Shown: positions 8,951 through 64,000 of the stretch, piece by piece
Numbering within the stretch: position 1 is the first letter of the stretch
How the letters are laid out: every line of letters begins with the position of its first letter
Assembly: GCF_032191835.1 (NCBI RefSeq)
Contig: NC_083226.1
Span: forward strand, 21,390,001 to 21,454,000
DNA length: 64,000 nt
DNA from: Heteronotia binoei
Taxonomy: Eukaryota
Direction: 5' to 3'
Notes under the pieces: model-generated
What the model saw: the letters and a program-made list of their open reading frames with translations, nothing else
What the model was told of the DNA's origin: nothing
The model's database searches: none
Made by a program: the position numbers and the translations under genes

Positions 8951-10863
8951 TTAATTTATATCCCGCCCTCCCCGCCAAAGCAGGCTCAGGCGGCTCACGT
9001 AACATAAATACAGCATTACAGTAGTAAAATAATAAAACAAATAAAATACCCCAATTTACAATTATTACTCAGTTAAGCACTATAACATCAATAAAACAAA
9101 ATTTGGTGCTATGAATACAACATAGCTTTGCATAGTGATGGTATAATAATTCCACATTAAAAAGCCAGCTGGAAGAGGACGGTCTTACAGGCCCGGTGGA
9201 ACTGGTTAAGGTCCCGCAAGGCCCGTACCTCTTCTGGTAGCTGGTTCCACCAGCGGGGAGCTGTTACCGAGAAGGCCCTCTCTCTTGTTGTTTTCAATTT
9301 GACCTCCTTCAGCCCAGGGATTGTCAGCAGGTTTTGTGAGCTAGATCGAAGCATTCTCTGAGGAACATATGGGGAGAGACGGTCCTTAAGGTAGGCAGGT
9401 CCTCGGCCATATAGGGCTTTAAAGGTAGTAACCAGCACCTTGTAACGAATCCGGTACACAATTGGCAGCCAGTGCAGTTCCCGCATCCTAGGCTGCTCCC
9501 TGGATGTGCTCCTACAGCCTGGATGTGTTCCCGCAGCCTATGTGCTCCCACTTAGGGAGTCCCATTAACAGTCTGGCCGCTGTGTTCTGCACTAGCTGCA
9601 GTTTCCGGGTTCGGCACAGGGGCAGCCCCATGTAAAGGGCATTACAGTAGTCTAACCTTGAGGTGACTGTTGCCAGGTCATTGCGCTCCAGGAAAAGAGC
9701 CGACTGCCTCGCCCGTTTCAGATGAAAAAAGACGGATTTAGCAGTGGCTGCTATCTGGGCCTCCATTGACAAGGAAGGCTCCAGTAGCACCCCTAGGCTC
9801 TTGACCCTGCGCACTGTTTTCAGTGGCGCACCATCAAAGACCGGTAGGGGAATTTCCCTTCCTAGACCGCCACGGCCCAGGCACAGGAACTCTGTCTTCG
9901 CTGGATTCAACTTCAACCCACTCAGCCTGAGCCAGCCTGCCATGGTTTGCAGCACCCGGTCCAGATTTTCTGGGACATCGCCAGGCCAATCGTCCATCAG
10001 TAGATAGAGCCGGATGTCATCAGCGTACTGATGGTAACCCAGCCCATACCTCCGGGCAATCTGGGCAAGGGGGCGCATGTAGATGTTAAACAACATCGGG
10101 GAGAGCACCGCCCCTTGAGGCACCCCACAATTAAGTGGGTATTTCTGGAACAGCTCTCCCCCAATCTCCACTCTTTGTCCCCGACCATCCAGGAAAGAGG
10201 AAAGCCATTGTAAGGCCAGCCCCTGAATCCCTGCATCGGCAAGGCGGCAGGTCAGTAACTGGTGGTTGACCATATTGAATGCAGCTGATAGGTCTAACAA
10301 CAACAGTCCTGCTGAACCGCCTCGATCCAGGTGCCGCTGGAGATCATCCATGAGGGCGAAGAGTACTGTCTCCTTCCCATGGCCCGGGTGGGAGCTGGAC
10401 TGGTATGGATCTAAGGTGAAAGTGTCATCCAGGAAACTCTGCAGTTGTGGAGCCACTGCCCTCTCAATGATTTTACCCCAAAAGGGTAAATTTGAGACCG
10501 GACGATAATGTGCCAATTTGGTCGGGTCTGATGTAATCTTTTTTAGGAGGGGGTGGACCACTGCCTCTTTAAGAGGCATTGGAAAAAGACCCTCTGAGAG
10601 GGATCTATTTACGATGTCCGTATAGGACACCTAAGCTCCCTCTGGCAAGCTTTAATTAGCCAGGAGGGGCATGGGTCCAAATCACAAGTTGTAGGGTGTA
10701 CAGTAGAGAGAATTATGTCAACTTCCTCCAGGCTGAGTGTGTTGAAGCAATCCAAGATTGAACCAGAAGACAGGCACGGAGCCTCGAGTTCACTTACTGT
10801 ATCCAACATGGCGGGGAGGTCATGGCAGAGCGACGTGACCTTGTCTGCAAAAAATTTCGCAGA
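8864..10863 (-). mobile_element. L2-clade LINE, 5'-truncated (~2 kb), RT domain largely open
   Basis: ORF 9512-10630: YRPVSNLPF.GKIIER, LLLLDLSAAF..V.H, GVPQG.VLSP.LFNIY, YADD; C-terminus LHWLPI..RI.YK...LRSS; (AAT)n tail at 8864-8950. Confidence 0.95.
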
Positions 10864-15419: not shown

Positions 15420-15516
15420 ATGCAAACATCATATTGAACATCTCTGCAGAGTGTGCAAATATGAAATATTAGAACGGGATATAGATCTAGTAAGCCAATC
15501 CTTTATAGATTTGCAT
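15420..15516 (+). promoter_or_regulatory. putative POU/octamer regulatory module upstream of TAS2R
   Basis: ATGCAAAC 15420, GTGCAAAT 15453, perfect ATTTGCAT 15509-15516; same arrangement upstream of every paralog. Confidence 0.6.
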
Positions 15517-15682: not shown

Positions 15683-16711
15683 ATGGCATCTGCATTCTTC
15701 ACAATACTGTTTACGCTTCTGGTTATGGAAGTCCTCGTTGGAATGATAGCCAATGGGTTTATTCTCCTCATCAATTGCATCGACTGGTTCAGAAGTAGGA
15801 AATTATCCCCAGTTGACTTGATCCTGAGCTGTCTTGGCTTGTCCAGACTTGCATGGCAGGCAATAGGCTTACTGGATGCAACTCTGTTTTTCTTTTTTCT
15901 GGGCACCTATCTATCCAGTTCCATGCAGTTAATGTTTCCTATCTTGTTTATGTTTATGAACACAGTCAATATTTGGTTTGCCACCTGGCTGAGTGTTCTG
16001 TATTTTGTCAAGATCACCATTTTCTCCCACCCAGTTATCCTTCGGGTGAAGCAGAGATTCTCCAGGTTGGTCCCATGGCTGCTTCTGGGCTCATTTGTCT
16101 TTTCTGCTGTTTTTACTACGATTATTATCACAGGCTTGAACTATGACGCTAGGAGTTGCCATCGCTACAAATCACTTCTAAGCAACAGCAATGATTCACA
16201 AATTAAAACACCTCCCTTCTGTTGGTACTTTACCATTCTAGCTACTGCTCCCCATTTCATTGCAATCTTGATATTTGCGTCATCCACCATCTTGTTAATA
16301 GTCTCTCTGTGGAAACACACAAGGAGTGTGCAATGCAATGGAGTTGGCCCCAGAGATCTCAGCACTCAAGTTCATTTGACTGCCATCAAAGCTCTGGCTT
16401 CCTTCCTTATTCTGTACCTGTCCTGTTTTATAGCGATCATTTTGCAGTCACTAATCACCTGGCGGAAGAATCACACTTGGACTTCTGTGCTTTATCATAA
16501 CGTGACTGCGGCATATCCTTCTGGACATGCCATTATCCTGATATTAATTAACCCAAGACTGAAACAGGCATGGGTCAGAATGCTACAGCATTTAAACTGT
16601 TTGAGAGACTTAGGCTGGTTTCACACTGTGAAATTGACACGATTGTATCGCATTCAGAAAAAATCCACTAAAGTTTGCACCATTTCTGGGCAATCAGAGA
16701 GCTGCTGCTGA
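15683..16711 (+). CDS. TAS2R: bitter taste receptor type 2, open ORF 342 aa with MITE-derived C-terminal 32 aa
   Basis: TAS2R motifs GMIANGFI.LINCIDW, LSPVDLILSCLGLSRL, WFATWLSVLYFVKI..FSHP, LLIVSLWKH, HLTAIK, YPSGHAIILILINPRLKQAW; ECL2 N-glycosylation site NDS. The ATG aligns with paralog starts. Confidence 0.95.
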   Translation: MASAFFTILFTLLVMEVLVGMIANGFILLINCIDWFRSRKLSPVDLILSCLGLSRLAWQAIGLLDATLFFFFLGTYLSSSMQLMFPILFMFMNTVNIWFATWLSVLYFVKITIFSHPVILRVKQRFSRLVPWLLLGSFVFSAVFTTIIITGLNYDARSCHRYKSLLSNSNDSQIKTPPFCWYFTILATAPHFIAILIFASSTILLIVSLWKHTRSVQCNGVGPRDLSTQVHLTAIKALASFLILYLSCFIAIILQSLITWRKNHTWTSVLYHNVTAAYPSGHAIILILINPRLKQAWVRMLQHLNCLRDLGWFHTVKLTRLYRIQKKSTKVCTISGQSESCC

Positions 16712-17163
16712 AATGGCAGGATCCTGGCAGCGGTCAGTGATTGCCCATTTACACTGCTAGTCGAGTTCAACCACGGACCTGCTGCAGAAAGGGTTGTCTC
16801 TTTTAAAAAAGGCCCTGTGTGTGCACTCAGTTGGAGAAGCAGTGAAGCGCACCTCGGAGAGGGTGAGGGGTAACCCCCCTCCTCCCTCCCTTGCCAGAAA
16901 CGGCTTGGTGCAATCACACAGCTCTTCCACTTATGAACCGCCCTAGGGCATTCAGACAGCAGCTGATTATGCAACCTACATCCGATTCAGGGGGATGCTA
17001 CTGGGAAAATCCAGGTAGCTTTTTGAGGCAGATAGGAGGCGTCTGGAGACAGGGTTAGTGTGGGTGCAGCTCGGAGGGCAGATGTGCTCGTGTGATTGTG
17101 CACTTTTAATCCTTTATGGGAGGCAGGGCTAGGTCGGGGCAAATCTCTTGTGTGAAACCACCC
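16613..17163. mobile_element. PIF/Harbinger-type MITE inserted two codons before the ancestral TAS2R stop
   Basis: TIR GGCTGGTTTCACAC / GTGTGAAACCACCC (13/14); TTA TSD at 16610-16612 and 17164-17166. Confidence 0.9.
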
Positions 17164-17809
17164 TTACTGTCTTAGAACCTCTCAAGAGGCCATTGGGAGA
17201 AGATATGCTCTTGAGGAAGAAGGATCCTGAAAAATCGTTTGAGTACAATCCCCAAAGCAGGGGTGCTCTATCCATCAGATACACCTAGGCTATCACCTAG
17301 GGCACTAGAGGTAGAGGGGTACCCAAATCAACTTGGGGCCCATGTTATCTCAAGAAACCTTATTAATGGTATAGCTTCTTGAACAGAATAGGCCTGAGAA
17401 TTTACTTTTAGTTTTCAGATTTGCAAATGTATATGCTTCTTACAGTTTTAAGTTTTCTCTCGTTCCAGCCTTGAGGAAGGAATGAGAATTTTGGGGGTAT
17501 AAATTTTAGAGAGTCAAAGTTCCCTCTTTCATGAAGGGAGGTTTGACTCTTGAAAGCTTATCTTTTTGGTCTCTACAGTGCTACTGTACTTGAATCTAGC
17601 TGTTCTACCACAGAGCAACATGGTTATCCTCTGAAACAATCTCAAGAAAAATAATCTATGACTAAAATGAACATGCCTAGACTAAATCTTACAATAAGTA
17701 GAACTCAGTTCAAAACAATTATTCTTTGGAAGATGCCACTCAATGCTCAGTTTACATCATGGCAGAGGAAACAAATTAAAAGAAGAAAAAAAAGTGGAGG
17801 AAGAAGAGG

Positions 17810-23489: not shown

Positions 23490-24434
23490 TTAAGATTGTG
23501 CTCCACTCAAATGGCATTTAAAGTGATGTAGCATCCTGACCCATGCCTGTTTTAGTTTGGGGTTAATTCGTATCAGGATAATGGCATGTCCAGAGCGACA
23601 AATAACACTCATATTGTTAAACAGCATAGATGGCCAAGTGTGCTTCTTATTACTCAAGGTTAGTATTGCTTGCAAAGTAATTGCTAGAAAACCAAACAGA
23701 TATAGAACAATGAAGGAAACTTGAACTTTAATGGCAGTCAGGTGAACTTGCGTGTTGAAATCCTTGACACCAGTTCCATTGTGTTGCATATGTCTTGTGT
23801 GCTTCCACATAGACGTTATTAGCAGGATGGATGATGACAAAAATATCAGAAAAGGAATGGAATCTGGGGCAGTAGCTAGAATATCCATGCTTCTACAGGA
23901 GTCAACCATTTTAGTTTTTGAATCATTGGTGCTCAAAAATGATTTGTAGGGGTTGCATTTGGACAAATCATTGTTCAAGCCTGCAAGTACAGTAATTGTC
24001 ATGATAGCAGAGAAGATGATTGAGCCCAGAAGCAACCACGGTATAAGTCTAGAGATTCTTTGCTTCATTTGGAGGAAAATAGGGTGGGAGAACATGGAGA
24101 TCTTTGCAAAGTAGAAAACACTTAGCCAGGTTGCAATCCAGATACTAGCAGTGTTTGTAAAAATCCAGACGATGGGAAGCAGTAAATACATGACATTCCA
24201 AATATGATTGCTTGGATAAAAGAAATGCAGAATTTCTTCCAGAATCACTACCATCAGCCACACAAGTCTGGACAAGCCAAGACAGGTCAGGATCAGGTCA
24301 GCTGGGGATAGTTTCCAGCTTTTGAACCAGTCAATGCAATTGGTTAGGACAATAAATCCATTTCCTACCATTCCAACGAGGGTTTCAATAGCCAGAAGTA
24401 TAAAACAAATTAATGTGAATAACGGAGCTTCCAT
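23490..24434 (-). CDS. TAS2R: bitter taste receptor type 2, open ORF 314 aa
   Basis: GMVGNGFIVLTNCIDW, LSPADLILTCLGLSRL, WIATWLSVFYFAKI.MFSHP, SMWKH, HLTAIK, SGHAIILI.INPKLKQAW; start taken at MEAPLF by alignment with paralogs. Confidence 0.93.
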   Translation of the reverse strand: MEAPLFTLICFILLAIETLVGMVGNGFIVLTNCIDWFKSWKLSPADLILTCLGLSRLVWLMVVILEEILHFFYPSNHIWNVMYLLLPIVWIFTNTASIWIATWLSVFYFAKISMFSHPIFLQMKQRISRLIPWLLLGSIIFSAIMTITVLAGLNNDLSKCNPYKSFLSTNDSKTKMVDSCRSMDILATAPDSIPFLIFLSSSILLITSMWKHTRHMQHNGTGVKDFNTQVHLTAIKVQVSFIVLYLFGFLAITLQAILTLSNKKHTWPSMLFNNMSVICRSGHAIILIRINPKLKQAWVRMLHHFKCHLSGAQS

Positions 24435-24571
24435 ATTTCTGAGTACAAAAGTTCTTCTGCAGTAATGCTCACTCTTTTCCTGATTATGTCCTTTCACAAG
24501 GCAATTCTACGACCTTCAGTGAAAAACAACTGGAGAGGCAGGAGCTATTTTCCAGTGTAGACTCATTTGAG

Positions 24572-32547: not shown

Positions 32548-33172
32548 TTAAGATGGTGCATCACTCACACAACATTTTAAGTGATGTATCATCCTGACCC
32601 ATGCTTGTTTCAGTTTGGGATTAATTAATATCAGGATAACAGCATGCCCAGAGGGATATACAGCACTCGTAGTTTCAAAAAACGCACTTCCAAGGGAGAT
32701 CAATTTTTCTATAAACCAGCAATGGCTGTAAAGTAATAACTACAAAAGTGGAGAAGTACAAAATAGCAAAGGAAGCCAGAGCTTTGATGGCACTTAAATG
32801 AAAGCTAATGTTGAGATCCTTGGTGCCGATTCCATTGTGTCGCAAATGTCTTACGTGTTTCCAAAGAGATATTATTAACAAGATGTGGATGACAAAAATA
32901 TCACAGATGGGATGACGTTTGGAGTAGTAACTACAATGAAAAGCAGCCTATACATGTGAAACGCTTCAGCTTCTGAAACATAGCTATTGTTCAAAAATAA
33001 TTTGTAGGAATTACAATTGGTTAAACTACTGCTTGATACTGTAGTAATAGTAATAATCATAGTAATAAAAGCAGTCAATGCAGCTGATGAGGACAATAAA
33101 TCCATTTGCTACCACTCCAATGAGGGTTTCCATGATGAGAAATGAAAAGCTGGTTATTGACGAGGTGTCCAT
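32548..33172 (-). pseudogene. TAS2R: TAS2R pseudogene (~320-bp internal deletion plus several frameshifts)
   Basis: MDTSSITSF...ANGFIVLISCID joins directly to the TM4 region; 1-2 bp indels in TM5, ECL3 and TM7. Confidence 0.93.
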
Positions 33173-36424: not shown

Positions 36425-37489
36425 TTAGGATAACAGCATGCCCAGAGGGATACAAAGCACTCATAGTTAGAAAAAGTACAGCTGTCCAAGAGAGATCATT
36501 GCTTATCCAAACCTTTATTTCCTGTAAATTGAGGACTACAAAATTGGAAAGGTACAAAATAGCAAAGGAAGCCAGAGTTTTGATGGCAGCTAAGCGAATG
36601 CTGATCTGGAGATCCTTGGTGCTGATTCCATTGTGTTGCAAATGTCTTAATGTATTTTCACAGAGATATTATTAGCAAGATGGTGGATGACAAAAACATT
36701 AGAGAAAGAACGAAACCTGGAGCAGTAATGGCAATGAAGAGCTGCCAAAACAAGTGAGGCTTTTAAACTTCTGAATCATAGCTATTGTTTAAATGTAATT
36801 TGTAGGGATCACAGATGGTTAAGGCACTGCTCGATACTATGGTAATAGTAATAGCCACAGTCATAAAAGCAGAGAAGTCCACTGAGCCAAAAAGTAGCCA
36901 TGGGACCAGGCCAGAGAATCTTTGCTTCACTTGGGGGATAATTGGGTGGGAGAAAGTGGAAATCTTTACAAAGTGCTGAGCCAGGTGGCAAACAAGAAGT
37001 TGAAAATGTATGTAAAGAACACATCATGTTAAAAAAGAAATGATTCAATATAAAAATGTGGAGAAAAAAGGAAAGTGTAGTCACATCTAGAATCACTACT
37101 GCCTGCCATGTGAGTCTGGCCAAGCCAAGACAGGTCCGAATCATATCCATTGGAGAGGGTTTCCTGCTTCTGAACTAGTCAATGCAACCAATGAGGACAA
37201 TGAATCCCTTTGCTATCATTTGGACGAGGGTTTCCATGATGAGAAATGCAAAGCCGGTTATCGACAGCAATGTGGCTATCTTTATGAGCATAAGAGAGTT
37301 TGTTCTGCTGCGATATTCACACTTTCCATCAACAGCACACAGCACAACAAACCTTCCATTTAAGATCAGATCAGGGGGTTTGGAGCTATGTTCAAGTGCT
37401 GGTCCTGGATGCAAATCTTCCTAGGAAGGGCCATGTTACTAAATCTATGTCCTGTTTCTAGGATGTCATATTTACACATTTCCCCCTTC

Positions 37490-39785: not shown

Positions 39786-40733
39786 TCAAGACGGTACTTC
39801 ACTCGCACACCATTTTAAGTGATGCATCATCTTGATCCATGCCTCTTTCAGTTTGGGATTAATTCCTATCAGGATAACAGCATGCCCAGAGGGATACAGA
39901 ACACTCATCGTTTGAAATATCACAAATGTCCAGGAGTGATCAGTGTTTCTAGAAAACAGCATTGGCTGTAAACTGTTAGCTACAAAACTGGAGAGGTACA
40001 ACATAGCAAAGGAAGCCAGAGTTTTGATGGCACTTAAATGAACGCTGGTGTTGAGATCTTTGTTGCCGATTCCATTGTGTCGCAAATGTCTTATGTGCTT
40101 CCACAGGGACATTATTAACAAGATTGTGGATGATAAAACTATCACAGACGGAATGACGTTTGGAACAGTAACTGCAATGGAAAGCTGCTTACACTTGTGA
40201 AGCACTTCAACTTCTGAACCGTAGCTATTGTTTAAAAATAATTTGTAGGAATGACAACTGATAAAGCTACTGCTTGATGCTGCAATAATAGTAATAGTCA
40301 TAGCCATAAAAGCAGAGAAGGCCACTGAGCCCAGAAGCAGCCATGGGACCAGCCCAGAGAATCTTTGCTTCGCATGGAGGAAAACAGGGTGGGAGAAAGT
40401 GGTGATCTTGACAAAGTACAAAATGCTGAGCCAGGCGGCGAATGTAAGATTGACATGGCATGTGAAGAACCACGCCATGGTGATCATTAAATAGACATGA
40501 TTCAATACATAAGTGTGCAGAAAAAAGGAAAGTGTTGTCACATCCAGAATCACAACTGCCAGCCATGCAAGTCTGGCCAGGCCCAGGCAGGTCAGGATCA
40601 GGTTAGTTGGGGAGAGTTTCCTACTTCTGAACCAATCAATGCAGCCGATGAGGACAATAAACCCATTTGCTACCATTCCGACGAGGGTTTCCGTGATGAG
40701 AAGCGCAAAGCCAGTTATCGCTGAAGTGTCCAT
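39786..40733 (-). CDS. TAS2R: bitter taste receptor type 2, intact 315 aa (319 aa from the in-frame ATG at 40745)
   Basis: All TAS2R motifs present (GMVANGFIVL.GCIDW, LSPTNLILTCLGLARL, FSHP, SLWKH, YPSGHAVILI.INPKLK); NNS glycosylation site. Confidence 0.96.
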   Translation of the reverse strand: MDTSAITGFALLITETLVGMVANGFIVLIGCIDWFRSRKLSPTNLILTCLGLARLAWLAVVILDVTTLSFFLHTYVLNHVYLMITMAWFFTCHVNLTFAAWLSILYFVKITTFSHPVFLHAKQRFSGLVPWLLLGSVAFSAFMAMTITIIAASSSSFISCHSYKLFLNNSYGSEVEVLHKCKQLSIAVTVPNVIPSVIVLSSTILLIMSLWKHIRHLRHNGIGNKDLNTSVHLSAIKTLASFAMLYLSSFVANSLQPMLFSRNTDHSWTFVIFQTMSVLYPSGHAVILIGINPKLKEAWIKMMHHLKWCASEVPS

Positions 40734-40875
40734 CTTTCTGAGCATAAGAGAAATGAGTTTCTTCTGCTGGGATATTCAGCCTTTCCACCAACAGCACCCG
40801 GCACAACACTGGGGCCCTCTGCTTAAGAACTCATCTTGGAGTTAGGAGCTATTTTCAAGTCCTGACTCTGTTAAG

Positions 40876-43582: not shown

Positions 43583-44524
43583 TCAAGATGGTGCTTCATT
43601 CACACCACATTTTAAGTGATGTATCATCTTGACCCATGCCTGTTTCAGTCTGGGATTAATTACTATCAGGATAACAGCATGCCCAGAGGGATACAGAGCA
43701 ATTATCGTTTGAAATATCGCAGATGTCCAGGAGCCATCAGTGTTTCCAAAAAACAGTATTGCCTCTGTACTGATACCTACAAAACTGGAGAGGTACAATA
43801 CAGCAAATGAAACCAGAGCTTTGATGGCACGTAAATGAACATTGGTGTTGAGATCCATGGTGCTGATTCCATCGTGTTGCAAATGTCTTATGTGCTTCCA
43901 AAGAGATACTATCAACAAGACAGTGAATGACAAAAATAACACAGATGGGATGACGTTTGGAACAGTAACTGCAATGAAAAGCCGCCAACACTTGTGAAGC
44001 ACTTCAGCGTCTGAACCATAACTATTGTTTAAAAATAATTTGGAGAAATCGCAAGTGATTAAGCTACTGCTTGATACTGCGAGAATAGTCATAGCCATAA
44101 AAGCAGAGAAGGCCACTGAGCCCAGAAGCAGCCATGGGACCAGCGCAGGGAATCTTTGCTTCGCATGGAGGAAAAGAGGGTGGGAGAATGTGGTAATCTT
44201 TACAAAGTAAAAAATGCTGAGCCAGGTGGCAAATGTAATGTTGACATTGTATATAAAGAACCACACCATGGTGATCATTAAATAGACATGATTCAATACA
44301 TAAGTGTGCAGAAAAAAGGAAAACGTAGTCACATCCAGAATCACTACTGCCAGCCATGCAAGTCTGGCCAAGCCAAGGCAGGTCAGGATCAGGTCAGTCG
44401 GGGAGAGTTTCTTACTTCTGAACCAATCAATGCAGCCGATGAGAACAATAAACCCATTTGCTACCATTCCAACGAGGGTTTCCATGATGAGAAGTGCAAA
44501 GCCAGTTATCGACAAAGTGTCCAT
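43583..44524 (-). CDS. TAS2R: bitter taste receptor type 2, intact 313 aa
   Basis: All TAS2R motifs present; closest in-window relative of the gene at 39786-40733. Confidence 0.96.
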   Translation of the reverse strand: MDTLSITGFALLIMETLVGMVANGFIVLIGCIDWFRSKKLSPTDLILTCLGLARLAWLAVVILDVTTFSFFLHTYVLNHVYLMITMVWFFIYNVNITFATWLSIFYFVKITTFSHPLFLHAKQRFPALVPWLLLGSVAFSAFMAMTILAVSSSSLITCDFSKLFLNNSYGSDAEVLHKCWRLFIAVTVPNVIPSVLFLSFTVLLIVSLWKHIRHLQHDGISTMDLNTNVHLRAIKALVSFAVLYLSSFVGISTEAILFFGNTDGSWTSAIFQTIIALYPSGHAVILIVINPRLKQAWVKMIHHLKCGVNEAPS

Positions 44525-51692: not shown

Positions 51693-52640
51693 TTAAGATG
51701 GTGCTTCACTCATATGACATTTTAAGTGGTGTATCATTCTGACCCATGCCTGTTTCAGTTTGGGATTAATTAATATCAGGATAACAGCATGCCCAGAGGG
51801 ATACACAGTACTCATAATCTGAAAAATTCCAGCTGTCCAAGAGCTATCATTCCTTATCTGAACCAGTAATGATTGTATATTGATGGTTACAAAACTGGAG
51901 AGGTACAAAATAGCAAAGGACGCCAGAGCTTTGATGGCAGCTAAGTGAACGCTGGTGTTGAGGTCCTTGGTGCTGATTCCGTTGTGTCGCAAATGTCTTA
52001 TGTGCTTCCAAAGAGATATTATTAACAAGACTATAAATGACAGAAATATCACAGAAAGAATGAAACCTGGAGCAACAACTGCAATGAGAAGCTGCCAACA
52101 CAAGTGAGGCACTTTAACTTCTGAATTATAGCTATTGTTTAAATGTAATTTGAAGGGATCACAAATGGTTAAGGCACTGCTCGACACGGCGATAATAGCC
52201 ATTGTCATAGTCATAAAAACAGAGATGGCCACTGAGCCCAGAAGCAGCCATGGGACCAGCCCGGAGAATCTTTGCTTCACTTGGAGGAGAATTGGGTGGG
52301 AGAAGATGGCGATCTTGACAAAGTAAAAAATGCTCAGCCAGGTGGCAAAAAAGAGGCTGACAGTGTATGTAAAGAACCACATTGCGTAAAAAAGGAAAAA
52401 GAAATGCTTCAATGCAAAAGTGTGCAGAAAAAAGGTAAGCAGAGTCACATCTAGAATCACTATTCCCAGCCATGCGAGTCTGGTCAAGCTCAAGCAGGTC
52501 AAGATAAGGTCAGTCGGGGAGAGTTTCCTGCTTTTGTACCAGTTAATGCAGCCCATGAGGACAATAAACCCATTTGCTACCATTCCGATGAGGGTTTCTA
52601 TGATGACAAGTGCAAAGCTTGTTATCCATGAAGCGTCCAT
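51693..52640 (-). CDS. TAS2R: bitter taste receptor type 2, intact 315 aa
   Basis: All TAS2R motifs present; first ATG is at 52640 (the track start at 52652 is GTG). Confidence 0.96.
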   Translation of the reverse strand: MDASWITSFALVIIETLIGMVANGFIVLMGCINWYKSRKLSPTDLILTCLSLTRLAWLGIVILDVTLLTFFLHTFALKHFFFLFYAMWFFTYTVSLFFATWLSIFYFVKIAIFSHPILLQVKQRFSGLVPWLLLGSVAISVFMTMTMAIIAVSSSALTICDPFKLHLNNSYNSEVKVPHLCWQLLIAVVAPGFILSVIFLSFIVLLIISLWKHIRHLRHNGISTKDLNTSVHLAAIKALASFAILYLSSFVTINIQSLLVQIRNDSSWTAGIFQIMSTVYPSGHAVILILINPKLKQAWVRMIHHLKCHMSEAPS

Positions 52641-52782
52641 CTTTCTCAGCACAAGAGAAAACAGTTTCTTCTGCTGCGATATTCACACTTTCCCTCAACA
52701 GCACACAGCACAACACTGGGGCCCTTTGTTTAAGAACCCATCTGGGCGTTAGGAGCTATTTTCAAGTGCTGGCCCTGTGAAG

Positions 52783-56544: not shown

Positions 56545-56613
56545 TTAAGATGGTGCTTCATTCACATGACATTTTAAGTGATGTATCATCCTGATCCATG
56601 CCTTTTTCAGTTT
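56545..56613 (-). pseudogene. TAS2R: isolated TAS2R 3' fragment (helix 8 + stop)
   Basis: Minus translation KLKKAWIRMIHHLKCHVNEAPS*; nothing upstream aligns to TM1-TM6. Confidence 0.85.
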
Positions 56614-57208: not shown

Positions 57209-58153
57209 TTAAGATGGTGGTTCACTCACATGACATTTTATGCGATGTATCATCCTGACCCATGCCTGTTTCAGTTTGGGATTGATTAATATCAGGATAA
57301 CAGCATGTCCAGAGGGATACGCAGCACTGATATTGTGGAAAAATACAGATGTCCAAGAACCATTGTTTCTTCTCCAATACAGTATTGTTTGTAAACTGAT
57401 GGCTAGCCAACAGGAGAGGTACAAAGCAGCAAAGGAAGCCAGAGCTTTGATGGCACTTAAATGAACATTGGTGTTGAGATCCCTGACTCCAATTCCATTG
57501 TGCTGCAAATGTCTTGTGTGCTTTCACAGAGATATTATTAACAAGATTGTGGATGACAAAAATATCACAGAAGGGATGAGATTTGGAATACTACGTGAAA
57601 TGACTAGTTCCATACAAGTGCGAGACTCCTGAATTTCTGAATCATAGCTATTATTCAAAAGTAATAAGTAGGGATCACAAATGGCTAAGTCACTGATAGG
57701 TCTTGCGAAGGCAATAATAGTAATCAAAGCAGAGAAAACTACTGAGGCAAGAAGCAGCCATGGGATCAGGCTTGAGAATCTTTGCTTCACTTGGAGGAAA
57801 AGAGGGTGGGAGAAGATGGCGATCTTTGTTAAATACCAAACACCAAGACAAGCAGCAAACCAAAGATTGACAGTTTCTGTAAAGGACCACAAGATAACAA
57901 CACTTAAATGTACCGGTTCCGTTAGATAGGTGTGAAGAAAAAAGGACAACATAGTTACATGCAGCATGACTAGTGCCTGCCACATTAATCTGGATAAGCC
58001 AAGACAGATCAGGATCAAGTCAGTGGGGGATAGTTTCTTGCTTCTGAACCAGTCAATGCAATTGATGAGGACAATAAATCCATTTGCTACTATCCCAACG
58101 AGGGTTTCCATGATGAGAAGCACAAAGCTAATTATCAAGAACAAGGTTGCCAT
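57209..58153 (-). pseudogene. TAS2R: TAS2R with a single premature stop (SLW to SL*, TGA 57524-57526), otherwise intact 314 codons
   Basis: ORFs 57524-58225 and 57209-57508 are in the same frame; all motifs intact. Confidence 0.93.
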
Positions 58154-59343: not shown

Positions 59344-59509
59344 CTGCCCAGTTTGCCCAGTCTGATCAGTTTGGAACCGTCTGCGGTGCTCCGTGAGTTG
59401 GCCTGCTGTGGAGTGTCAAGCCAGAGTGGACGTCTGCTACCGTGGTTGGTGTGCAGGAGTGGAGACTAGCTCGGAGAGGTTTGGAACAGTGGTGCTGAAG
59501 GTTTTCATC

Positions 59510-60950
59510 ATGGCTCTAATTGCAACAGCTCAGATAGTGGGAAAGCTCACCTCCACTAATTACAATGCGTGGGCTCTCCGCTTGGAGCATTATCTCAAAC
59601 GAGAAGGTTTATGGAAAATTGTCGAGTCGCCTCCAGACCAGCTGGATGAGGAGGACACTGCCAAGGATGAGAAGGCATTGGCAACAATAGTCCTGAGTGT
59701 GGGAGACGATCAACTGATACACCTAACCGATAAGCGCACATTGAAGGCTGCTTGGGACTCTTTGAGAGCAGTATATGTGCAAGTTACAGCAGGTTCATTT
59801 ATTGCACTTACCCAGCGGCTTTATAGAACTGTAATGAGACCGGGGGAGTCCGTTAGAGCACATCTGAATGCTCTCGCTGAATGCTGCAATGAGTTGGCTG
59901 AGAGAGGAAAAACTGTGTCAGAGGAAGATAAGGTTTATCTTATCCTGAGCTCGCTGTCGACAGAGTATAATATGCTAGTAACTGCTTTGGAGACGGTGGA
60001 GGCCAGCAAACTAACTTTGGAATATATTACCGGGCGTTTACTGGATGAGGAGCGTCATTTGCAGCAGTCTGGTTTATCAGCTTGGCAGCATACCGGACTG
60101 GGGGAGTCTGCAAAGCAGGAGGCCAGCAGGGAAGCGTCAGCCGGGAACCGACTTGGAGCAAAGCCGGAGGTTGCCCTACATGTAAAGAAATGTTTTCATT
60201 GTGGCTCTTTGAAGCACCTGAGGCGTGAGTGTCCTGAGGGGAAAGTCAGACAAAAGTATGGAGGCCGGTCTGCAGGAGCTGAGGGTTACTCAAATGCATC
60301 TCTTGTGGTGACTGACAACGCTGAGTCATCTGGAGTGTGGATTATTGACTCTGGTGCGTTGTAGATTTTTTGCAAGGATGAGAATTTACTGCAAAATAAA
60401 CATTCACCACAACGGCAAACTGTCTGCCTGGCTGATGGCAGCAGTTCAAAGGTACTCTGGCAGGGGTGTGTGGCTTTTCCCAACTTGTGTCACACATTTC
60501 CTGATGTTTTATGTGTGCCAGCTCTAGAGAATAACTTGCTAAGCGTGTCTGTGCTGGACAAAGTTGGATCTACTGTCACGTTCACTGATAACACCTGTAA
60601 GATAAGCAGAGATGGTGCAGAGCTTGGAACAGCTAAATTGCTAAATAATGTGTATGTGTTAGACACAAATACTATGACTGCTAAAACTGTATTAAATGTA
60701 CCACAACATGATAATTGCGTGCACCTTTGGCACAGAAGATTAGGGCATGCTAATTTTCATGCAATTGATAAAACACTGCAAATTGTGGGGAGAAATTGTG
60801 TGAAGGAATGTAAACAGTATTTAGACTGTGATGTGTGTAAGCATGCCAAAACAACTGCATTCCCGGTTGCACAGAGGAGTGACAGAGTAACGAATAAGCC
60901 CCTGGAATTAGTTCATGCCGACGTAATTGGGTCATTTGCCAATAGTCATT
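59510..60950 (+). mobile_element. Ty1/copia gag-PR-IN(start), 3'-truncated
   Basis: gag (LTSTNYNAWALRLEHYLKREGLW), zinc knuckle CFHCGSLKHLRREC, protease WIIDSGA, GAG-pre-integrase LWHRRLGH..CDVC, integrase PLELVHADV; one in-frame TAG at 60362; no RT, RNaseH or 3' LTR. Confidence 0.93.
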
Positions 60951-63616: not shown

Positions 63617-64000
63617 TTAAGATGTGGCTTCACTCACATGGCATTTTTAGTGGGGTATCATTCTGACCCATGCCTGTTTCATTTTGGGATTAATCTCTTC
63701 CTTTGAGAACGCACGCATAGCTGGTCTTGAGGTCAAAAGGAGATTGAGGAAGAATCGCACTGCTACAGGACCAACCCTAAATCAGACTTTTCCCTGCAGC
63801 CGCTGTGGCCGGACCTGCCTGTCCCACATTGGTCTTGTCAGCCACCAGTGAGCCTGCAGCAAACGTGGACTATTGCACCCTTCTTAAATCTTCGTTCGCG
63901 AAGCCAAGCCGAGAGAGAGAGAGAGAAAGAGAGTATCTGGATAACAGCATGCCCAGAGGGATACACAGCACTCATAGTATGAAAAAGCACAGGTGTCCAA
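63617..64000 (-). pseudogene. TAS2R: TAS2R pseudogene, 3' part (continues beyond the window)
   Basis: YPSGHAVI.I [insertion] INPKMKQAWVRMIPH*KCHVSEATS*; RTE insertion plus a TAA nonsense codon. Confidence 0.9.
63695..63933 (+). mobile_element. RTE-clade LINE 3' fragment inserted in TAS2R TM7
   Basis: FPCSRCGRTCLSHIGLVSH zinc-finger-like C-terminus, CTTCGTTCGCGAAG hairpin, (GA)n tail. Confidence 0.85.

Follow-up and report, generated by a model that had tools for sequence, protein, structure and literature searches.

An old transposon insertion gives an open TAS2R gene of the gecko Heteronotia binoei a new 32-residue C-terminus

Heteronotia binoei carries a large cluster of TAS2R receptor genes, and in one of them a transposon has swapped the natural C-terminus of the open reading frame (ORF) for a new one of 32 amino acids (aa). 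We analysed this gene within a 64,000-nucleotide (nt) stretch of the forward strand (NCBI RefSeq assembly GCF_032191835.1, contig NC_083226.1, positions 21,390,001 to 21,454,000; hereafter the window, in which positions are counted from the first letter), where an earlier reading of the sequence alone, which we call the original prediction, had reported the exchange; every detail of that observation is borne out here, and its interpretation in part. A single-exon TAS2R was struck by a 551-bp non-autonomous transposon making 3-bp target duplications, which landed in the near-palindromic TTGAGAGAC-TTA-CTGTCTTAG, three codons before the stop. Translation would pass from helix 8 directly into the element's left terminal inverted repeat (TIR), a read-through expected of an intronless gene and an element devoid of polyadenylation (poly(A)) hexamers, and would stop 32 codons on. 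The protein would thereby lose its last two residues and gain a basic, Ser/Thr-rich, probably disordered cytoplasmic tail of 32 residues. Because the ORF, the conserved residues and an upstream octamer module have stayed intact since the insertion, we consider the receptor most likely still in use. Our favoured explanation, which we regard as reasonably probable, is thus an old insertion into a receptor that continues to serve, with the tail as a tolerated passenger and not a selected module. The sequence establishes how the insertion is built, its empty site, the element's family and age, the intact ORF and the fold, and from these we infer transcription, translation across the junction, continued function and a neutral tail.

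The element lies at positions 16613 to 17163 in plus orientation and is the sole copy of its family in the window. It is bounded by 14-nt inverted repeats (GGCTGGTTTCACAC at 16613-16626 and GGGTGGTTTCACAC at 17150-17163, the right end compared as its reverse complement) that agree at 13 of 14 positions; no other match to the TIRs occurs in the window, where 0.06 would be expected by chance. A TTA target-site duplication stands on either side, the left one (16610-16612) doubling as the last TAS2R-derived codon (Leu) and the right one (17164-17166) leading into the orphaned ancestral gene end, CTG TCT TAG (Leu-Ser-stop; 17167-17175, plus strand). The insertion point is thus three codons upstream of the ancestral stop, which survives at 17173-17175. 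Deletion of the element together with one TTA yields ..TGT TTG AGA GAC TTA CTG TCT TAG AACCTC.., confirming that excision restores the ending GAC TTA CTG TCT TAG, and the last 12 bases and 3' flank of this restored end align with intact paralogues in the window (..CCA TCT TAA AACTT.., ..CCG TCT TGA AACCT..). The pre-insertion protein had 312 residues, of which 310 are retained (the last being the Leu of the left TTA) and two are lost, with 32 gained.

Two orthologue-like sequences lack the insertion. Logan contig L013 (SRR13336339) encodes a 314-aa protein (P0003) and Logan contig L014 (SRR13336341) a second one (P0002), both closing with ..PS-stop. The orphaned CTG TCT TAG can be aligned to the paralogue, L013 and L014 ends, ..CCA/CCG TCT TAA/TGA/TAG, and the shared flank AACC... 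follows. Compared with the focal locus, L013 has a Jukes-Cantor distance of 0.20 in the 5' flank (295 nt) and of 0.25 in the 3' flank (61 nt), and because the alignment holds on both sides of the gene, the empty site of L013 is a true one. Paralogues and orthologues have one codon more than the reconstructed end, whose 3-nt gap is upstream of the insertion site and unrelated to the insertion. No second allele or haplotig with an empty site is present in the assembly, in which the nearest paralogue is 77% identical. The proposed match of the restored end to paralogue ends and to a paralogue-type 3' flank stands, with the L013 flank in agreement, and the ancestral 312-aa form is readable from an end that aligns with paralogues and orthologue-like contigs alike.

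The interrupted gene is an open, full-length TAS2R, as had been proposed. Its 342-aa ORF runs on the plus strand from an ATG at 15683 to a TGA at 16709-16711 with no internal stop; the exact product is already present in NCBI, UniRef and nr, and the open frame is thus already annotated as a protein. The TAS2R-derived coding part is a single exon of 310 codons (15683-16612, plus strand), 74% identical to P0003 and 75% to P0002. The Pfam TAS2R profile (PF05296) matches with an E-value of 9.4e-77 (258.6 bits against a cut-off of 22.2), and its coverage is nearly complete, with ORF residues 1-304 aligned to profile positions 1-302 of 303. Among solved structures, human TAS2R14 (8rql) is the best relative, with E 3e-32 and residues 8-304 aligned. 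An AlphaFold2 model of the 342-aa protein, based on an alignment of 58 homologues and with a mean predicted local distance difference test score (pLDDT) of 76, places transmembrane (TM) helices at residues 2-38, 43-72, 79-115, 117-155, 179-218, 226-260 and 265-289 and helix 8 at residues 291-311, whereas tail residues 312-342 score 40-50. Profile, predicted fold and single-exon structure all identify the protein as a TAS2R with seven TM helices and helix 8, and the claim that these helices are intact is upheld by Pfam coverage and the AlphaFold2 helices together.

The element belongs to an abundant family, with at least 1738 first-look candidate copies in the 2.63-Gb genome. Forty scored copies are full length and 83-87% identical to the focal element, copy size is 530-554 bp, and frame 1 of the element's plus strand, the only frame translated, contains stops. 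Terminal inverted repeats, small size, non-coding sequence, high copy number and 90% identity to the family consensus together make it a member of a MITE-like family (MITE, miniature inverted-repeat transposable element). In a survey of 31 copies with flanks, all had a 3-bp target duplication, perfect in 22: TGA four times, TCA three times, ATA, ATT and AAA twice each, and TTA, TTG, TCT, AGG, CCA, TTT, GTG, CTT and TGT once each. The duplications tend to begin with T and end with A, and a single one of the 22 perfect duplications is TTA or TAA, namely the TTA of the focal copy. Pooled half-sites give an extended palindromic target of approximately CTGAGACWC-TNA-GWGTCTCAG, a motif inflated by the 7-8 of 27 independent copies that lie in one same other repeat. 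The focal target matches it at 7 of 9 positions per side, and landing exactly at the end of a TAS2R gene is plausible because the target there fits the family palindrome. Maize PIF is said to prefer CWC-TTA-GWG, which resembles the core found here. The 7-8 copies sharing the other repeat sit at the same site of it, in either orientation, which indicates that the family is strongly target-specific or that a composite was co-amplified.

The original prediction had called the element a Harbinger MITE. Its MITE-like part holds on TIRs, size and copy number; its Harbinger part is a reasonable guess that remains unproven, given the scarcity of TTA/TAA duplications and the results of a search for a partner. 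A scan of the genome with the PF13359 (DDE_Tnp_4) profile gave at least 696 candidate Harbinger-type transposase remnants, and neither the element's TIRs nor similarity to it occurred at the 29 loci sampled (15 with 1.5-kb flanks and 14 of 10 kb, so that the far ends of long elements may lie outside). Many of the DDE_Tnp_4 candidates tie in score and have frames open for about 245 aa; in a few, on C5 and C15, the frame is open for 443-566 aa, and these could encode intact transposases or be domesticated genes like HARBI1.

By several measures the insertion is old. Against a consensus built from 26 family copies the focal copy is 10.2% divergent, or 7.5% at non-CpG sites, where other copies differ by 4.0%-7.8%. 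None of the 40 scored copies exceeds 87% pairwise identity to it, corresponding to about 6.5% or more on its own lineage. We estimate the age at about 6-10% neutral divergence. The focal TAS2R lineage has accumulated a synonymous divergence of 0.093 since its node with L013 and L014, and about 0.08 as judged from the 5' flanks. Such figures place the insertion early on the focal lineage, after its split from the two empty-site species, and an insertion of this age is most likely fixed.

The sequence upstream of the gene has also been kept. An octamer-like module at 15420-15516 (plus strand), a candidate promoter element shared with intact paralogues and alignable with L013, consists of ATGCAAAC at 15420, GTGCAAAT at 15453, thus with a spacing of 33 nt, and, at 15509, ATTTGCAT in perfect form. 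The same arrangement precedes paralogues B, C and D, down to the 33-nt spacing of the first two sites, their perfect ATTTGCAT standing 134-174 nt ahead of the ATG, and equivalent sites lie upstream of the paralogues at 40733, 44524 and 52640 (ATGCAAAx, GTGCAAAT 33 nt on, and ATTTGCAT). We regard the module, which is conserved in L013, as a candidate POU-factor promoter element; its conservation argues for regulated expression of the focal gene. No AATAAA or ATTAAA occurs inside the 551-bp element, for which reason a transcript would probably cross the whole element and its junction, and the first such hexamer downstream of the new stop, at 17775-17780 (plus strand), is a candidate poly(A) signal.

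The tail would be read from frame 1 of the element through its left TIR (32 codons, 16613-16708, plus strand) to a new stop, TGA at 16709-16711, a position at which 24 of 26 family copies also have TGA. Its description as basic, Ser/Thr-rich and ending in Cys-Cys is accurate: its 32 residues include eight Ser/Thr, six Lys/Arg and three Cys, ending ..SESCC, and they contain one PxPxxP-type Ser/Thr pattern, TISGQS. Codon 22 is TGC in the focal copy and TGA in 20 of the 26 independent copies, so the majority frame stops there. The focal TGC is common to five other copies, three of which also share TTG at codon 11. We considered a post-insertion stop loss (TGA to TGC) that would have lengthened the tail from 21 to 32 residues; since five other copies have TGC, the 32-codon frame may alternatively have been inherited from the source element.

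The residues of the tail bear no apparent mark of selection. All six differences from the consensus across its 96 coding bases are non-synonymous, two of them private (Pro to Arg at codon 13 and Asp to Glu at codon 29), and its mismatch rate is no different from that of the rest of the element (6/99 against 50/448, P=0.15). The purifying selection or conservation by which an exapted transposable element (TE) segment is recognised is thus not seen in the tail, in a small sample of low power. With a tail predicted to be disordered and a frame that stops at codon 22 in most copies, a role for it, as the original prediction had entertained, finds no support. Rab-type CC or CXC prenylation needs a Rab fold recognised by Rab escort protein (REP). 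The tail has no CaaX box, with no Cys at -4, and belongs to a G protein-coupled receptor (GPCR) and not a Rab, so that no known motif supports the suggested lipidation of the terminal Cys-Cys; lipidation or phosphorylation of the tail is speculation. Some effect of the tail is conceivable, since C-terminal Thr residues matter for the expression and function of human T2R4 according to a passage in PMC4880206 that cites Upadhyaya 2015.

Whether the receptor is still maintained can be judged from how long its ORF has stayed open. In neutral simulations, a 930-nt ORF was given the element's own load of substitutions and indels and scored as open if it kept its start and acquired neither stop nor frameshift; the probability of remaining open was 0.0001-0.009 at d=0.075-0.10 and rose with smaller d, to 0.01-0.04 for d=0.05 and to 0.07-0.15 for d=0.03. 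Since neutral survival over the element's divergence has a probability of about 0.0001-0.04, selection on the receptor with its new tail is suggested, and the original proposal that it may be functional gains indirect support from the insertion's age together with the open ORF. The protein keeps all 15 invariant columns of the family. Of the 63 columns whose conservation reaches 85% or more in a set of 55 other sauropsid TAS2Rs it retains 60, and its orthologues do the same; two of the three losses (W89F and K292R) are shared with the orthologues and one (P194A) is private. The insertion itself costs only the two least conserved terminal residues, beyond helix 8. The alternative is that the gene is dead or dying: the tail or P194A would have abolished function, and the ORF would be open by chance, in an unprocessed pseudogene that has yet to acquire a stop. 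A number of observations speak for this alternative or otherwise weaken the reading we prefer. P194A removes a TM5 proline kept by 96% of the other sauropsid TAS2Rs. The focal lineage has 19 synonymous and 39 non-synonymous changes, a ratio of non-synonymous to synonymous rates (dN/dS) of 0.62 that is not on its own significantly below 1 (one-sided P=0.06) and is nearly twice the 0.35 and 0.33 of the orthologues (contrast of non-synonymous to synonymous counts, P=0.06). Conserved columns are avoided by private changes to a weak degree, 2 of 22 falling there where 4.6 would be expected (P=0.12). The age rests on a 26-copy consensus in which sub-family structure may inflate the figure, and the branches leading to L013 and L014 have roughly double the length of the focal branch. 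Pseudogenes are common in the cluster, and the locus was picked for its open ORF, which weakens the argument from chance. These points are set against the low neutral probability of an intact ORF, the retained conserved residues and the retained octamer module; moreover, the decayed TAS2R neighbours at about 32.5, 36.4 and 57.2 kb carry stops, unlike the focal ORF. We therefore hold a dead gene to be unlikely, though it deserves serious consideration, and conclude from the sequence comparisons that the receptor is probably maintained, possibly under relaxed constraint.

The tail could itself have been co-opted, with a Ser/Thr cluster (TISGQS, a match to the arrestin phospho-code, acting through GPCR kinases and arrestin) and/or palmitoylated Cys residues altering desensitisation or trafficking, and selection keeping the tail in place. 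A cytoplasmic, basic tail with Ser/Thr at a quarter of its residues (8 of 32) and a Cys-Cys end would suit such a role, as would a 32-codon frame that is open here where 20 of 26 copies are closed, a receptor ORF long retained with the tail attached, and the reported importance of C-terminal Thr residues in T2R4 (PMC4880206, in the part citing Upadhyaya 2015). On the other side, the tail codons have no synonymous and two to six non-synonymous changes and diverge no differently from the remainder of the element, codon 22 is TGC in five other copies too and so may be a sub-family variant, and the tail is disordered in a low-confidence prediction. In a peptide so rich in Ser/Thr, chance would be expected to produce a PxPxxP match, and the Cys-Cys end is neither a CaaX box nor, outside a Rab recognised by REP, a likely substrate for Rab-type prenylation. 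Co-option thus seems improbable to us. It is less probable still that the structure arose as an artefact of assembly or is a rare allele private to the animal sequenced, a notion encouraged by the single copy of the locus in the assembly: a perfect 3-bp duplication with exact restoration of frame and flank is the signature of transposition and not of a mis-join, and a unique copy, with no scored copy closer to it than 87% identity and a divergence of 7.5-10% from the consensus, is neither recent nor collapsed, while an insertion of such age would be expected to be fixed. The tolerated passenger on a receptor still in use accordingly remains the explanation that we prefer.

The window contains five intact TAS2R ORFs (the focal gene and those at 23490-24497, 39786-40745, 43583-44524 and 51693-52652) and, all on the minus strand, decayed copies at 32551-33172, 36426-37267, 57212-58135, 56548-56613 and 63620-63724; two of these have several stops or frameshifts, the copy at 57212-58135 keeps its full length but has one in-frame stop, and the remaining two are short fragments of the 3' end. 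Elsewhere on the same contig, outside the window, the NCBI Heteronotia binoei TAS2R proteins P0004, P0020, P0059 and P0069 have aberrant C-termini that diverge from the family immediately past the NPKLKQ motif or earlier, and within the window P0037 (23646-24371) is a 252-aa model at a place where the genomic ORF is full length. These aberrant models look like gene-model splices or further insertions, and annotation of the cluster needs manual curation. Between the TAS2R genes lie two ORFs that, judged by eye, are retroelement remnants: a reverse-transcriptase-like one of 372 aa, of the long interspersed nuclear element (LINE) type, at 9512-10630 (minus strand), and a gag-like one of 323 aa with a CCHC zinc-knuckle motif at 59393-60364 (plus strand).

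Little is understood of what the short C-termini of TAS2Rs do. The locus described here offers a natural receptor that has apparently lived long with a 32-residue foreign cytoplasmic tail and whose ancestral 312-aa form is still legible, so that the 342-aa and 312-aa pair is a ready-made comparison for the role of the tail in surface expression and desensitisation. It also illustrates how a palindrome-targeting transposon can strike the end of a coding sequence without killing the gene. Were the tail co-opted after all, it would be a rare case of a MITE-donated functional C-terminus in a vertebrate chemosensory GPCR, in the Heteronotia lineage; we found no literature on transposon-derived TAS2R tails. 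The insertion is otherwise a single event, specific to one lineage and to one gene among more than 40 paralogues, and leaves current understanding unchallenged.

The receptor resembles vertebrate TAS2Rs, including the solved human TAS2R14, TAS2R46 and TAS2R4, in its single-exon ORF of about 310 residues with seven TM helices and helix 8, in its motifs (LSR in TM2, W..L..Y..KI in TM3, SLWKH in TM5 and NP(K/R)LK after TM7) and in its place within a tandem cluster of at least 40 paralogues. It differs from its relatives in having Ala instead of the conserved TM5 Pro, and in its end: sauropsid TAS2Rs stop 7-8 residues past the helix-8 Cys with ..PS-stop, whereas the focal protein continues for 32 transposon-encoded residues. 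The element, for its part, shares with Tourist-like PIF/Harbinger MITEs such as mPing and mPIF a small size, absence of coding sequence, short TIRs starting with GG, high copy number, a 3-bp duplication (TTA at the focal copy) and an extended palindromic target around it. It is unlike canonical PIF/Harbinger elements such as mPing, for which 45 of 46 insertions are at TTA or TAA (PMC4561436), against one of 22 perfect duplications in the focal family, and no same-ended DDE_Tnp_4 locus occurs among the 29 sampled. Accepted exaptations are recognised by purifying selection on TE residues or by their conservation across species, and the focal tail departs from them in showing neither, with two orthologue-like sequences that lack the insertion. 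Read-through into an element inserted near a stop, giving a lineage-specific C-terminus, is a known route (reviewed in PMC7786948), and the locus is a further example of that phenomenon: as in known TE read-through C-termini, the insertion lies just before the stop and the ORF runs on to the first in-frame stop in the element.

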